A DNA stretch of 64,000 bases from Orbicella franksi (GCA_964199315.1 OZ116699.1:33108001-33172000), one strand, 5' to 3'. Counted from the stretch's first letter, positions 45,901 to 54,900 are shown. A program made the numbers and translations. Notes: a model not told the origin generated them from the letters alone.

Positions 45901-48900
45901 CAAGTAAGGATGGTCCCCAGAGAAACTGCCTGTCAATTTCCCAAGTGTCTTCGTCATCTGCAAACCTGTCAATAAAGATACTTGTTATTTCATGGTTATA
46001 TCGTTGTTATTGCCGGACCGACCATGTGAGAAGTGATTCAAGCACAGGTCCACTTACTCATGCATTACAGGTCGTACCACTGTGGAGCCATCCATTTGTG
46101 CCTCGTAAAACAACGTGTACAGGAATGGCAGTAACCTGTAACGTGTCTGAAGTACTTTACGCGCCTTATTCGCGAATTCCTCGCCAAATGCTGTAGGGTC
46201 TTGTGCCTGATAATAGGGGAAAAAAAGAGAAAAATAGAGAAAAATAGAGAAAAATAAATAATAGAGGAAAAAAAAAAAAGAAATGTTGATAAGTCGAAAC
46301 AAAAACTGATATAGTACTATCTCATCAGGACCCAGCAGGAGACATTTTCTCCTCAGAACTTTGTTCCTTTTAACAGAGACCTTTCGCAAAAAGAAAAGGA
46401 TTGCCTGACAAAAAGGGCACATTCATCCACCATGCAAGTATTTTATGGTTAGACTTCCAGTCACCCCCTCCTGGCCACCGCTACTTCCAGTACCAGTGCT
46501 TCTCTTCCGTTCCTAGGAAGGCTAAGCAACTCAAGAACAGTATGTCTTACGAGAGGGCTTATTACCTTGTTCCTTTTTTCATTGTGGTTTCTGAAGAAAG
46601 GATAAAACGCGCCAAGTTGAGTCCATCGAAGGCACATCTCGCTTGTCGGATGATTAAAGAAACCACACACATCCGCTCCAACCTTGAAAACGAAATAAAT
46701 ATTCCGTCAGGCACGGATTGATCGGCACGGCACTGGAAAACAACAAGACTTAGATACTTAAAAAATATTTATATATTTAGAAGACCGGATGCCTGGAGGA
46801 GAAAGACAAAAAGGAAATTCCAAGAATTAAAAAAATGCATTGACGCGACTTTTTGTGTCTTCAGAAAAAATTACATGCATGGACAGACACGAGGCGTAGG
46901 TAACTTGAATACCGGACACCACTGGAAGGAATCAATATTGAGGCACACAGAAATTCAAATACAACGGACACTCACGTAAGAAATACCAAAGAGGTTGAAC
47001 TCGAGCATACCTTAAAAATAACACAGGGAAAAAAAATTAGGAGCAAAAAGAGGCAATTACAATATAAAAAACGTTCACTGAAGATAAAAATATACTAAAA
47101 TTGGAAAGAGCAGAAAAATAGTTTACCAATGATTGACGTGTGAAGCTGGTCCCATGATGCCTTGTTGTCTCCTAGCCAATGCCCGCCATATTTTCCACTG
47201 CTGGGGAAAGTCGATCTTGAAATCACCAGACTTCTTTTTCCTGTGCTTTGCCTGGCAGCGCTGAAACATTTAAGTAAAGAATGGTGATGACTTAGTTCAC
47301 GCAGAAGCGACAGGTTAAGGTGGAAACTCTAAATACCAAGACAAGAATATGGTGGGGGTAGTGTTTGAACGTGACGAGGAATAAAATAGTCTGAAGGGTG
47401 TTAACTACTCCGGTTGGCAAAAGTTTTATTCCTTGAACACACACACTCTAATAATGAATAATGTCCAACTTTATTCACGAGTTTTTATACTTATGTAAAT
47501 CTTGGAAAGTTCCAGAAGCGTCTCTGCATATATTTGGGTTTGCGGGACAATGTAGACTAATTATCAAACACTCTACATGACGACTGTAGTTGAAAGGTGA
47601 CAGAATGAATAGACTTACATAAACTGATTATGTAACAAAGGGAAGGGTTAAGAATTTCGGCTACCTCGGAAACTTTTGTTCGCATCAATTTGCTCATCAC
47701 CTGGCTGACGCAATGCCCCTATACTCCAATTAACATTTTACTCAACAAGTTATTATCACACTTACTCCAGAGTGATCAATGTCTGACTCCAGCCGTACAA
47801 GCTGTGAACGTTATAATGTAGATGGTTGGTTTGTTTTGCATTCATACATACAGTCCTATCCGCCATGACGTTCCCGAAAGTCCCTGCAAGAGAAAAACAC
47901 ACTTGAACGTTGGTCCATACGCACAGCATACTGGAATAATTACATTCAGATAATTTGTAAAAAACGATTCTGAAATGCCTCGTATATGCTTGAGAGAATA
48001 CTATTCTCGGAAATAAGAAACAGATTGAAAAATAACAATAAAAATTTTTAAAAAAATTCCCTGGTATCTGTAGCCTCATATTCCATTTCGCCCATGTCTT
48101 GAAGAATGCAGCCAATCGGGACCCTAAATTCTTAGGTATCCTACGGATGATATTCGCCAGTTTTCGCGCTGAAATTCTGGCAGGCAGCGAGCGCCAGCTG
48201 TTTTTCACTCGATCAGCTCAGTTCAAACATGAATGATAACTTATCATTCGAGAGAATAATTTGACTGTACGAGGAAACAGCTTTCCTTACTTGGTTTATA
48301 AGGTGGATAGTCCCACTTGTTTTTGCTGCATCCACTCACACTACCATGAACAATGTTGGCGGGTTCATTCTTGTCCTAAAAGGAGCAACATCAGTTTACA
48401 TTTACTAAAGCACCATTGCGATGAGTCGACTTTTAAAACAAGCAATCAAAACAACTTAAGACTGCTTGTAAACTAATAATTAAGGAGGTTAATACAGCCG
48501 TTTGTGACAGACGAACGTGAACCGGAGGTCGAATTTTCTCTTCTTTGGAACGTATTTGAATGCTTATTTTAATACGTACATGTATTCTAATACCTTTTTA
48601 ATACTAAAATGAGACCTTTCCAACTCATTGGTGAAGTGGGGGTGGGGGCGGGGGGCGAAGGGAACGCGCCACCCTTTAACAATTTTACTAACACACTTAC
48701 AATCCACAATCCGTCGAACTCAATGATGTTGTGAAAGTCCTTGATGAGTTCTCTCCAGTATTTACTGATGTTTGGGTGGAAATAGTCTGGAAATATGACG
48801 TGCTGACGAGACAGCTAAAAGCAAACATAACACATGGTAAGGCTGAATGAACCGACCTTTATCTCTTATTTATTCGCCTGAGTTTTTGATACTAACTTGT

Positions 48901-51900: not shown

Positions 51901-54900
51901 CTAAAAGAAATAGAAAACATGTTCTCCATGTTTCTATCGAGTTATAGAAGCACTCGTGAAAGTTTGGGAGAACTCAAAAAAGCTGTGGAAACACTCGCCT
52001 AACAGCTCCTGTTCCCCAGCAGTTCTATGTTCTCCCAAACTTTCACTCATGTTTCTAATTACTCGATAGAACACGGTACATGTTTTCTATTTCTTAAATA
52101 ATAACAAATACACAAACAATAATGAAATGTCAGTGTATAAATCAGTTTTTTGCTTTAAGAAATTTGAGAATACCTCAGTATACTGTTTGATGACATCCTC
52201 AGGGGAAGGACCAAGGAAAATGTAGAAATCAAGAATTCCTCCAATTGTTCGATATGTAATAGCTGGCTTTGGTTGCAAGGCAACATCTATTAAAAATCAG
52301 CAGCAACAACTGTATGTTATATACATGTAGCTTTCCCTCGAATTTAACAATGATGGCTGTACAATGTTGACACTTTATGTACATGTATGCCACTCCTTCC
52401 ACTAAGTGACCCCTTTCTAATGAGTGCTCTTTTTTAATAAGGACCCCTATTCCAACAAGTTCCCTCTTCCGGTGAACCCCCAATAATTGAAAAGTGACAT
52501 TCAGGACTTTGAAATTTACTAGACTTATTAGATGAATGAAGAAATCTGAACATAATCTGAACTACAATTTAAGACCATCAGAGCTCCTATTGTTTGTCCT
52601 TGGAGTTCTTGAGTTAAAGTATCTGCTGTTTTTCAGACGCCCAAAATGAATTAGCCACTCAGCAGGTCTAAGACGAGCCCTCTGTCCCATAAGCACCCTC
52701 CCTTAAGCAGTCAAAGGTACAAATTAGCACCTAGGGCACTAACTCAAACCATTGTGTCATGTGTCACTAAAAAAATCCAATTTATACAATGAGGAGAACT
52801 TTAGGAAATTTAAGACATTAAAAAGGAAAAGTTTAAAAGTGTCAGTCATTCCAATCATTGTATGGACTTGCACTTACCCATGGCATTACTGTTCATCAGA
52901 AAAACTCCATGAGATTTGCCATCATTCTCCATACAAGTATAGAAAGGATGATGCCCATACAAATTTCCCCCATTCTGTAGGCATTTAGATGTAGGAACAA
53001 AGTTCAGTTGTGTCACTCTATAATTTATTTCAGAAGTCTTTCATCTCACAGATGTATCAGTAAATTATTTTTTGAAGAATTTAAATTTAAAAATTTTGAA
53101 CCAAAGCTACTCACAAATGGATGCTGACGTCTGGCGAAGATAGGAAGTACCCCCCAGGCAGACAAGTTATGTTTTAATGACTTGTGCTCGTGTTCACCAA
53201 ACCCATACACGAATGTCGAAGGGGGCTGAGTGGAGATCTGTATGTACTGGTCTTCAAATATGAATGGGCCGACAGAGGTGTCCCAGCTGTTATCAAAGCA
53301 GTTGTACTATCACTTGAACAGTTTGTTAAAACAAAGTCATCCATCAACTCTTAAGCCTGCAGATTCAACCATCTCACATCACTATGTTTGACCAAAGTGG
53401 CCAAGAGCGATAAGGAGTAGTTATTAATTTGTAGGCTAAGTACTCTTTACTTTTATAATCACATTAACATTAATCTGATCATAACTTAGCATTTGGTAAC
53501 TCTACTTACATTACAGCATCATTGTCTTTTCGTATTATTTTTAAAGAGAATGGATCCTTTTCAATGGCAACTGTGTACTTTGGATCTGAAGCTTTTGACG
53601 TCCTCTTTGGCATAGGTACTGGTACCTCATATCTCTGATTTATGGTGTCATAGAGCTGCAGAAATAAGTTGATGTTTAAGGTACATGTAACATTGCTCAG
53701 AAAATTAAAACTCCTAAATAACAGTTATTTGCATCCAATAATCTGATGTGACCCACTCACTTGTCCCCTCCCTTCCCCCTCCACCATCAAAAAAGAAGAA
53801 TATGGCTTAATTTGATCCTGCACCTTAACAGCAGTTTGCTCCAGTAGTGAAGAATTTCATCATTGAAATGTCAAAAAGTCATCAGTAAAAGGAATACTGA
53901 CACTGACATTGAAACAAAATAAATGAGAACTACCTAGGTCGTGTAGAAGTCACCTGCAAGAAAATAACTAACAAAGCAACATTAATGGCAACAGAAACAG
54001 AAAATTAACCTGCCAATTCAGATGCATGTCACAGGCTTTGGCACTAGTTCATTTATTTAGCCCCAAAACAGCTGGTACACAAAATATTGTCAATAATATG
54101 ATTCAGAAGTAAATTTTTATAACATCTGCCTTTAACACCAATAATTATTTATTGTTGGAATTCTACTTAATTTTAATTCATAGCAGCTACAGTTCTTTCA
54201 CTTTAGCACTGTGAGTAAGGAAATCTTCATCCCTTACCTTAAACCTAATACAGTCATTTGTCTGAAACTCTACATCAAGTGTGACCTCATCTATGTCTTG
54301 TCCATATATGGTACTGGCAGAGCGTCTTTTTAGTGTAACTTTGTAACCTAACTGTGTTTCCCGCACATCACCTTCAATCTTGTATCCACCTTGGTATGAT
54401 TTTGGAAAAAAGCACCAAGGAACACTCTGTAGATTAAAATTTCTATCTGTTATTTAGCACTTATATTTAGCAGTCATACTTGCAGATAATTTGTCTGCAT
54501 GTGGTGTCATGGCAGCCATACAGTATAAGTTTTATGTAACGGAACATACAACAAGTATGAAATTTATTCCTTTCTGTTAAATAACACTTTTAATACATGA
54601 ACCAAATGATCAAACCCATCAGTTCAAAAGTTCAACAACCCCCCCTTCTTCTCTTGCCTTGCAATCCCCCCACCCCCTCTTCCCTTGCAATTGCCTTAGC
54701 AGCCCCACTAAGCATTGAGTATCTTGAATATTCCCATCCCCCGGCACCGGGGGAGGGGGGTGGGGGGTTAGCGTAAAAAGCGCGTTATTGTTTTATCTTG
54801 GCAAAGTTGACTAAAACATTTATCATTGTAAATGTTTTACTGCGTTACCTCGGTGCGTGATTGCTCCCATGTGCATCCCCGAGACTCGCAAAGAGTTTGG

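Follow-up and report, generated by a model that had tools for sequence, protein, structure and literature searches.

A probably re-specialised GH31 alpha-glucosidase paralog with a replaced aglycone subsite in the coral Orbicella franksi

The 64,000-nucleotide stretch of Orbicella franksi DNA analyzed here (GCA_964199315.1 OZ116699.1:33108001-33172000, referred to as the window) carries two genes for enzymes of glycoside hydrolase family GH31, which we call copy 1 and copy 2. On balance, we favor the view that copy 2 is a real, selectively maintained and re-specialised paralog of a CtMGAM-like coral alpha-glucosidase, and that it probably has a new job. Judged from the alignments, everything that serves a maltooligosaccharide on the leaving-group side of the active site is replaced or removed in copy 2: the +1 residues read R/S/K/I, the +2/+3 tryptophan is gone, and the rim carries H, N and EKR. 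The MGAM/SI/GAA branch of the family has been treated as invariant at the -1 and +1 subsites. Copy 2 swaps the whole +1 set and keeps the catalytic pair, and may serve as a natural experiment on the determinants of aglycone specificity in a medically important fold.

Both gene models were assembled manually on the basis of splice sites and conserved blocks. Copy 1 (28346-40931, plus strand) is a gene of 24 exons with 935 codons. Copy 2 (55001-42930, minus strand) also has 24 exons and comprises 898 codons, with an ATG at 55001, a stop codon at 42932-42930, and an open frame. All introns of both genes are of the GT-AG type, and 46 of 46 splice sites of copy 2 are intact. Motif scans and comparison of the window with itself placed the two genes in convergent, tail-to-tail orientation, forming a near-palindrome. 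DNA identity is 80-95% in their exons, their introns are mostly unalignable, and the two proteins are 85% identical. Six copy-2 exon translations matched the GH31 TIM barrel profile (PF01055), collinear with the order of the profile, and five of these matches exceeded the gathering score (best E=1.5e-16). The translation of copy-2 exon 1 matched the Pfam Trefoil domain.

Copy 1 is 98.5% identical to an annotated protein of Orbicella faveolata (P0360), and sequencing runs that contain the DNA carry coral labels, both of which point to a stony coral in or near Orbicella. The best solved relatives of P0360, which represents the copy-1 ortholog, are CtMGAM, NtMGAM, NtSI and GAA, with CtMGAM (human and porcine; PDB 3TON/3TOP and 9KZ6) as the best match. 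The domain order of CtMGAM (trefoil, N-domain, TIM barrel with inserts, two beta domains) is shared, and so are its 21-residue LDWD insert, nucleophile, acid/base and -1 residues. Copy 1 keeps the ancestral D/W/M/F set at the +1 subsite, the tryptophan of the LDWD insert at +2/+3 and a hydrophobic tail resembling a glycosylphosphatidylinositol (GPI) signal. Like copy 1, CtMGAM has D/W/M/F at +1 and the insert tryptophan, in contrast to copy 2, which has R/S/K/I and lacks the tryptophan. Copy 2 is also a single-domain protein ending in HQEL, whereas CtMGAM is part of a membrane-anchored tandem enzyme. Human GAA (PDB 5NN3-5NN8) has the same fold and catalytic motifs, and its residues D282, W481, M519 and F525 align with the changed positions of copy 2. 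GAA keeps all four of these residues, does not have the 21-residue insert, and is targeted to the lysosome.

A first-pass annotation, made from the sequence alone, had proposed that copy 2 departs from copy 1 at four positions of the +1 subsite. All four substitutions were found on the minus strand with the codons claimed. In the N-loop (53121-53135), FTRDQ has become FARRQ, the D>R change (GAC>CGT, 53129-53127) involving three of three bases. The second arginine of this motif, R216, aligned with D203 of the NtMGAM structure 2QLY. In exon 10 (49413-49460), S418 replaces the tryptophan equivalent to W406 and W1355 (TGG>TCG, 49457-49455). The annotation had written this change as KVWP to KVSA; the serine stands, and the lysine is the last codon of exon 9 (AAG, 50095-50093), joined to VSA across intron 9. 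The motif DKNEPANI (48352-48375) contains the other two substitutions, K472 (M>K, ATG>AAG, 48372-48370; M444-equivalent) and I478 (F>I, TTT>ATT, 48354-48352; F450-equivalent). It aligned with D443, M444 and F450 of 2QLY and with D518, M519 and F525 of full-length GAA, and its nucleophilic aspartate (48375-48373) is kept. The count given for exon 17 was also exact: of its 149 nucleotides, 8 differ between the copies, and 7 of these differences are synonymous.

Published structures assign these positions to the aglycone site, as the annotation had supposed. In a cryo-electron microscopy study of porcine MGAM, the +1 ring is hydrogen-bonded at O2 and O3 by Arg579 and by Asp256 of the N-loop, the pocket walls at this subsite are formed by Trp459, Met497 and Phe503, and the -1 and +1 residues are described as completely conserved (PMC12805851). 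As the nucleophile is Asp496 in porcine numbering, Asp256, Trp459, Met497 and Phe503 correspond to D203, W406, M444 and F450 of NtMGAM; the arginine counted with them in the +1 subsite is retained in copy 2. In GAA, the +1 sugar is bound by D282, through a hydrogen bond, and by R600, and W481 and M519 move with the substituent on the aglycone side (PMC5653652). M519 is also listed as a hydrophobic contact of the -1 ring (PMC5653652).

The rebuilding of copy 2 extends beyond the four residues that had been listed. The N-loop also carries A214 (T>A) and H218 (F>H, T205-equivalent). Four codons encoding GYAK are inserted at the end of exon 9 (50093-50104), just before the W>S change. A 15-nucleotide deletion in exon 10 removes five amino acids including the LDWD tryptophan, the equivalent of CtMGAM W1369, which is described as a +2/+3 subsite residue in the human enzyme (PMC12805851). 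Copy-1 exon 10 aligned with the CtMGAM insert VWPDFPDVVVNGSLDWDSQV. Further substitutions are Q324L, G326S and I328V in the motif around the retained -1 aspartate (50791-50805), A536G (47187-47185), and two changes in the region of loop 7 and RNHN (46572-46661): D>N after CGFF (46655-46653), at the position of L577 and N1561, and GFG>EKR directly after RNHN (46580-46572), which differs in six of nine nucleotides. By analogy, weak evidence would place the EKR triplet at the pocket rim; in a docking study, ligands are contacted by its GAA equivalents S676, L677 and L678. The two new positive charges that had been expected (D>R and M>K) are an undercount. When GFG>EKR and D>N are included, the listed substitutions shift the net charge by about +5.

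The catalytic machinery has been left in place. The GH31 retaining pair is present in copy 2, with the nucleophile in WIDKNE and the acid/base in GHWLGDN, as are the other motifs reported to be kept, namely DxDYM (as DVDYM), SRWGY, SRSTF, GADVCGF and RNHN. The D327-equivalent aspartate (50796-50794) and, in the segment at 47167-47217, both the R526-equivalent arginine (47217-47215) and the acid/base aspartate (47169-47167) are retained, and F602 and H627 are kept in the loop 7 region. In NtMGAM numbering, the alignment showed the -1 residues D327, R526, H600, I364, W441, W539 and F575 to be conserved in copy 2, the sole exception being the conservative change I328>V. The idea of an untouched -1 site thus holds for the catalytic pair and the hydrogen-bonding residues, but not for I328 and not for the M519-equivalent lysine. 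As M519 of GAA contacts the -1 ring, the M>K change touches the -1 site too.

The new residues are exceptional among animal enzymes. In 304 animal GH31 proteins searched with the pattern W-[ILVM]-D-x-N-E, the residue after the nucleophile was methionine in 485 of 486 motifs and never lysine, and the F450 position was phenylalanine in 483 and never isoleucine. Loose regular expressions for the N-loop and G.VWP matched non-homologous sites, and their results were disregarded. A residue table was drawn from an alignment that included dog MGAM and sequences of four other stony corals, two anemones, hemichordates, echinoderms and amphioxus. Copy 1 and all 15 of these outgroup sequences (the four corals, the two anemones and nine deuterostome sequences) had D/W/M/F at the four test positions, and R/S/K/I was seen in copy 2 and in its ortholog from a second coral.

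This ortholog (L003) lies on a 228-kb contig (L003/L010) of an independent, long-read coral metagenome assembly. It is intact, with 24 exons and all GT-AG introns, and its protein is 90.4% identical to that of copy 2. It shares FARRQ, GKGYAK-VS including the GYAK insertion, the insert shortened by five residues and without tryptophan (intact in copy 1), both residues of the catalytic pair, and the C-terminal PHQEL. The codons are identical except for AGA instead of AGG at the arginine of EKR. A convergent copy-1 ortholog, recovered for exons 13-24, lies downstream and keeps RNHNGFGNK and the hydrophobic tail. The ratio of nonsynonymous to synonymous substitution rates (dN/dS) between the two copy-2 orthologs was 0.16 (bootstrap 95% confidence interval 0.13-0.22). 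The predictions that R/S/K/I would be kept by orthologs and that dN/dS would be well below 1 across the gene are borne out by this comparison, which supports neofunctionalisation over decay and a maintained, re-specialised paralog. Most open reading frame fragments from coral relatives lay on contigs whose length made them unusable for such a comparison.

The second coral also bears on the suspicion that the two copies are haplotypes, or a mis-assembled inverted duplicate with sequence errors near a gap as the source of the odd residues. Such an artefact would be suggested by an assembly gap 5 nucleotides from exon 10 and by the near-palindromic arrangement of the genes. However, exon identity is only 80-95%, no alignment of the introns is possible, exon 1 sequence occurs in many independent short-read runs, and the independent long-read assembly has both convergent genes with identical codons at the key sites. 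The exon/intron divergence and the second-coral locus led us to reject this explanation, which we regard as barely credible.

The direction of change was clear from comparison with other cnidarians. All six other cnidarian sequences compared had a hydrophobic C-terminal tail and the states of copy 1, and copy 2 is on this basis the derived form. In a protein tree, copies 1 and 2 were sisters that separated after the split from Pocillopora, with a path to copy 2 about twice as long. When changes were polarised by the other corals, 33 were assigned to the stem of copy 2 and 26 to the lineage of copy 1. Of the 33 stem changes, seven hit positions invariant in the 15 outgroup sequences, compared to none of 25 in the lineage of copy 1 (Fisher p=0.016) and one of 64 on the terminal branches of copy 2 (Fisher p=0.002). 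As stem changes are enriched at invariant positions, chance is excluded as the source of the copy-2 pattern.

Synonymous divergence between the paralogs is a mosaic. Exons 4, 9, 10, 12 and 16 had a dS of 0.64-0.74 between copies 1 and 2, against 0.28 in the other exons, whereas dS between orthologs was alike in the two classes (0.32 and 0.28). At fourfold degenerate sites, the paralogs differed at 0.37-0.39 versus 0.18-0.20 (p about 0.001, with exon 7 added to the high set after the data were seen). The high-dS exons are the ones that carry the active-site differences; examples are 53115-53286 in copy 2 and 30743-30914 in copy 1. A tree based on these exons only, with weak support, did not join copies 1 and 2. 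The pattern suggests partial gene conversion between the inverted copies. It fits an older duplication followed by homogenisation of most exons through conversion, but it also fits a faster mutation rate in exons 4, 9, 10, 12 and 16, and either way it complicates dating of the duplication. Under the conversion reading, the exons with specificity residues escaped, which points to selection on the differences. The differences between copies 1 and 2 would then be held by selection against homogenisation, and the locus looks like a case of selection keeping specificity-determining exons distinct between otherwise similar inverted paralogs. A least-squares fit to four taxa, for the C-terminal half, gave a dN/dS near 1.1 on the internal branch and 0.10-0.25 on the terminal branches. 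The history of a burst followed by constraint that these values would describe was set aside, because the mosaic of per-exon dS breaks the assumption of a single tree.

The two proteins also differ in their C-termini. In copy 1 and its relatives, the C-terminus is a hydrophobic stretch of the type seen in GPI signals. In copy 2 this tail is replaced by the C-terminal sequence HQEL (42933-42944, minus strand), kept as PHQEL in the second coral. HQEL matches the PROSITE motif for the endoplasmic reticulum (ER), [KRHQSA]-[DENQ]-E-L, as quoted in PMC2140024. In a screen of KDEL variants, histidine at position -4 was as effective as lysine, and position -3 tolerated all residues except proline (PMC2140024). 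HQEL itself was not found among the tested C-terminal retrieval motifs in the literature searched. Taken together, these features suggest that copy 2 may be retained in the ER. Both types of tail are present in the second coral (copy 1, 40773-40931, plus strand, and L010 12060-12218; copy 2, 42930-43010, minus strand, and L003 16168-16248). As the GPI-like tail and HQEL are each kept there, the change of address would be as old as the change of the pocket.

If these features are taken at face value, copy 2 would still form a glucosyl-enzyme intermediate, but maltose and maltodextrins would no longer be efficient substrates. Its substrate would be a different alpha-glucoside, with an aglycone that is smaller, more polar and possibly anionic, and the enzyme would work probably in the ER or early secretory pathway and not at the cell surface. 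Should HQEL be an ER signal, the closest functional parallel is GANAB, the alpha subunit of ER glucosidase II, which is a GH31 alpha-glucosidase of the ER lumen with a substrate other than maltose (Glc-alpha1,3 of N-glycans). GANAB owes its retention to its beta subunit and not to a C-terminal signal of its own. It is also a distant relative (about 265 bits compared to about 900 for MGAM), and copy 2 arose recently from an MGAM-like gene.

The charge pattern makes an anionic aglycone plausible. Cationic residues that set specificity have a precedent within GH31 in sulfoquinovosidases such as E. coli YihQ, in which arginine and tryptophan residues recognise an anionic group. The cationic residues of sulfoquinovosidases bind the 6-sulfonate in the -1 subsite, whereas the new charges of copy 2 are predicted on the aglycone side and its -1 hydrogen-bonding residues are unchanged. 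A more specific proposal is that copy 2, retained in the ER and equipped with a cationic aglycone pocket (R216, K472, K630, R631), could cleave an alpha-glucoside whose leaving group is anionic (a phosphate, sulfate or carboxylate), this substrate perhaps being derived from the host or a symbiont. In this detailed form the proposal is speculative, and we think it rather unlikely to be right. Anionic-aglycone specificity, if true, is not described for the MGAM/GAA branch. In a wider sense, copy 2 may be a sign that reef corals use an alpha-glucoside that has so far gone unrecognised as a substrate.

Several points weigh against a maintained enzyme with altered specificity. The first concern the active site. 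The side-chain geometry of copy 2 is deduced from that of its homologs, and the M>K change next to the nucleophile could cripple catalysis. Copy 2 might then be a weak or dead pseudoenzyme that is kept for its binding of glucose or glycans, for instance as a lectin-like factor of the ER. The replacement of a nearly invariant methionine that also contacts the -1 sugar and the loss of all aglycone contacts are in line with this possibility, HQEL would put the protein among the lectins of ER quality control, and purifying selection would be equally expected for a binder. On the other hand, both catalytic aspartates and every -1 hydrogen-bonding residue are kept in two lineages, and a pure binder needs neither. 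Pseudoenzymes usually lose at least one catalytic residue. We consider a binder unlikely.

The remaining points concern the start codon and expression of copy 2. Compared to the second coral (AAATGGACA), the start region in the window (AAATGACA) has a 1-nucleotide deletion. Because of this deletion, the original ATG (55021-55019) now opens an upstream open reading frame (uORF) of seven codons (54998-55021, minus strand; MASFHKK-stop). Its TGA (55000-54998) overlaps the next in-frame ATG (55001-54999). The original ATG is in strong context, with G at -3 and G at +4, and translation of copy 2 may thus be weak. The 121-nucleotide stretch around the deletion was found with a share of 1.00 in at least 20 sequencing runs under three species labels, including eight RNA runs; this test used nine sampled words, with a chance of about 2% that none spans the deletion if sampling was random. 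The deletion is real and common to the species group. The rescued N-terminus is strongly hydrophobic and signal-like, and from this hydrophobicity copy 2 is predicted to have an N-terminal signal peptide.

As to expression, RNA runs contained 0.25-0.41 of the sampled words from 45800-49400, copy-2-specific words included. Copy 2 is likely transcribed. However, words internal to exons make up only about 17% of this region, and the share beyond exons indicates a contribution of unspliced RNA or carried-over DNA. In addition, no copy-2-type protein was present among the 5.8 billion proteins searched, in which the next match after P0360 was a Pocillopora protein at 80%. Public annotations may have missed copy 2 or classed it as a pseudogene. 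Six highly conserved columns, including the invariant proline of VWP, were changed in copy 2 of the window compared to two in its ortholog. Together with the missing protein match, this hints at some relaxation in the window lineage.

These observations raise the question of whether copy 2 was a functional, diverged paralog in the past and is now becoming a pseudogene in the species of the window. The deletion, shared under three species labels, ends the original frame after codon 7, the strong-context uORF overlaps the rescue ATG, and the excess of changes at conserved columns and the lack of an annotated protein in the collection are in line with incipient loss. Against this stand the 898 other codons and 46 splice sites, which are intact, the hydrophobic, signal-like N-terminus provided by the in-frame ATG, the presence of the exon 1 region in RNA runs, and a dN/dS of about 0.16-0.25 on the terminal branch of the window copy, far under 1. 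Copy 2 does not qualify as a pseudogene by the usual criteria: its sole lesion is the deletion, which affects codon 8 in the old frame and is bypassed by the in-frame ATG. We judge ongoing loss to be quite improbable and retain the view that copy 2 is maintained.

The assembly gap mentioned above consists of 136 N (49466-49601) inside copy-2 intron 9, and lies 5 nucleotides upstream of exon 10. Exon 9 ends at 50093 in phase 0 with a GT donor, and exon 10 begins at 49460, also in phase 0, after TGCAG. The 3' end of the intron can thus be read over 5 nucleotides only before the gap begins. At the same position, copy 1 has an intron of 150 nucleotides and the second coral one of 242 nucleotides, with no additional exon in either, and the reading frame of joined exons 9 and 10 is open. 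Because the exon phases match, neither comparison gene has an extra exon, and the joined frame is open, we take the gap to be intronic, leaving the reading frame unaffected. Beside it, intron 9 contains an open reading frame of 86 codons (49671-49928, minus strand) that includes the sequence LRWVLSS and had no Pfam match. We suspect that it is a transposon remnant, which may explain the assembly gap.

Some minor features of the two loci were also noted. Codon 281 of copy 1, in exon 6 (31782-31894), encodes histidine in GGILDFHIF. P0360, which is identical in these exons, has the same residue, and copy 2 and nearly all other animals have tyrosine. This is the sole change of the copy-1 lineage at a near-invariant position. 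Intron 16 of copy 1 contains a long (TTTC)n microsatellite (36678-36745, plus strand). Elsewhere in the window, the segment 18001-22000 stands out from the remainder by a raised G+C content (0.45-0.48) and a strongly negative AT skew (-0.21 to -0.25). In the second coral, a reverse-transcriptase gene (zf-RVT, RVT_1; L010 18849-20567) has been inserted into the copy-1 ortholog ahead of its exon 13, in all likelihood within intron 12, and it prevented the recovery of exons 1-12. Finally, L003 18740-19080 is an element of about 340 bp that shows inverted similarity within itself. Sequences 99.7-100% identical to it occur on three further contigs of this coral assembly, and it looks like a small mobile element that was recently active.

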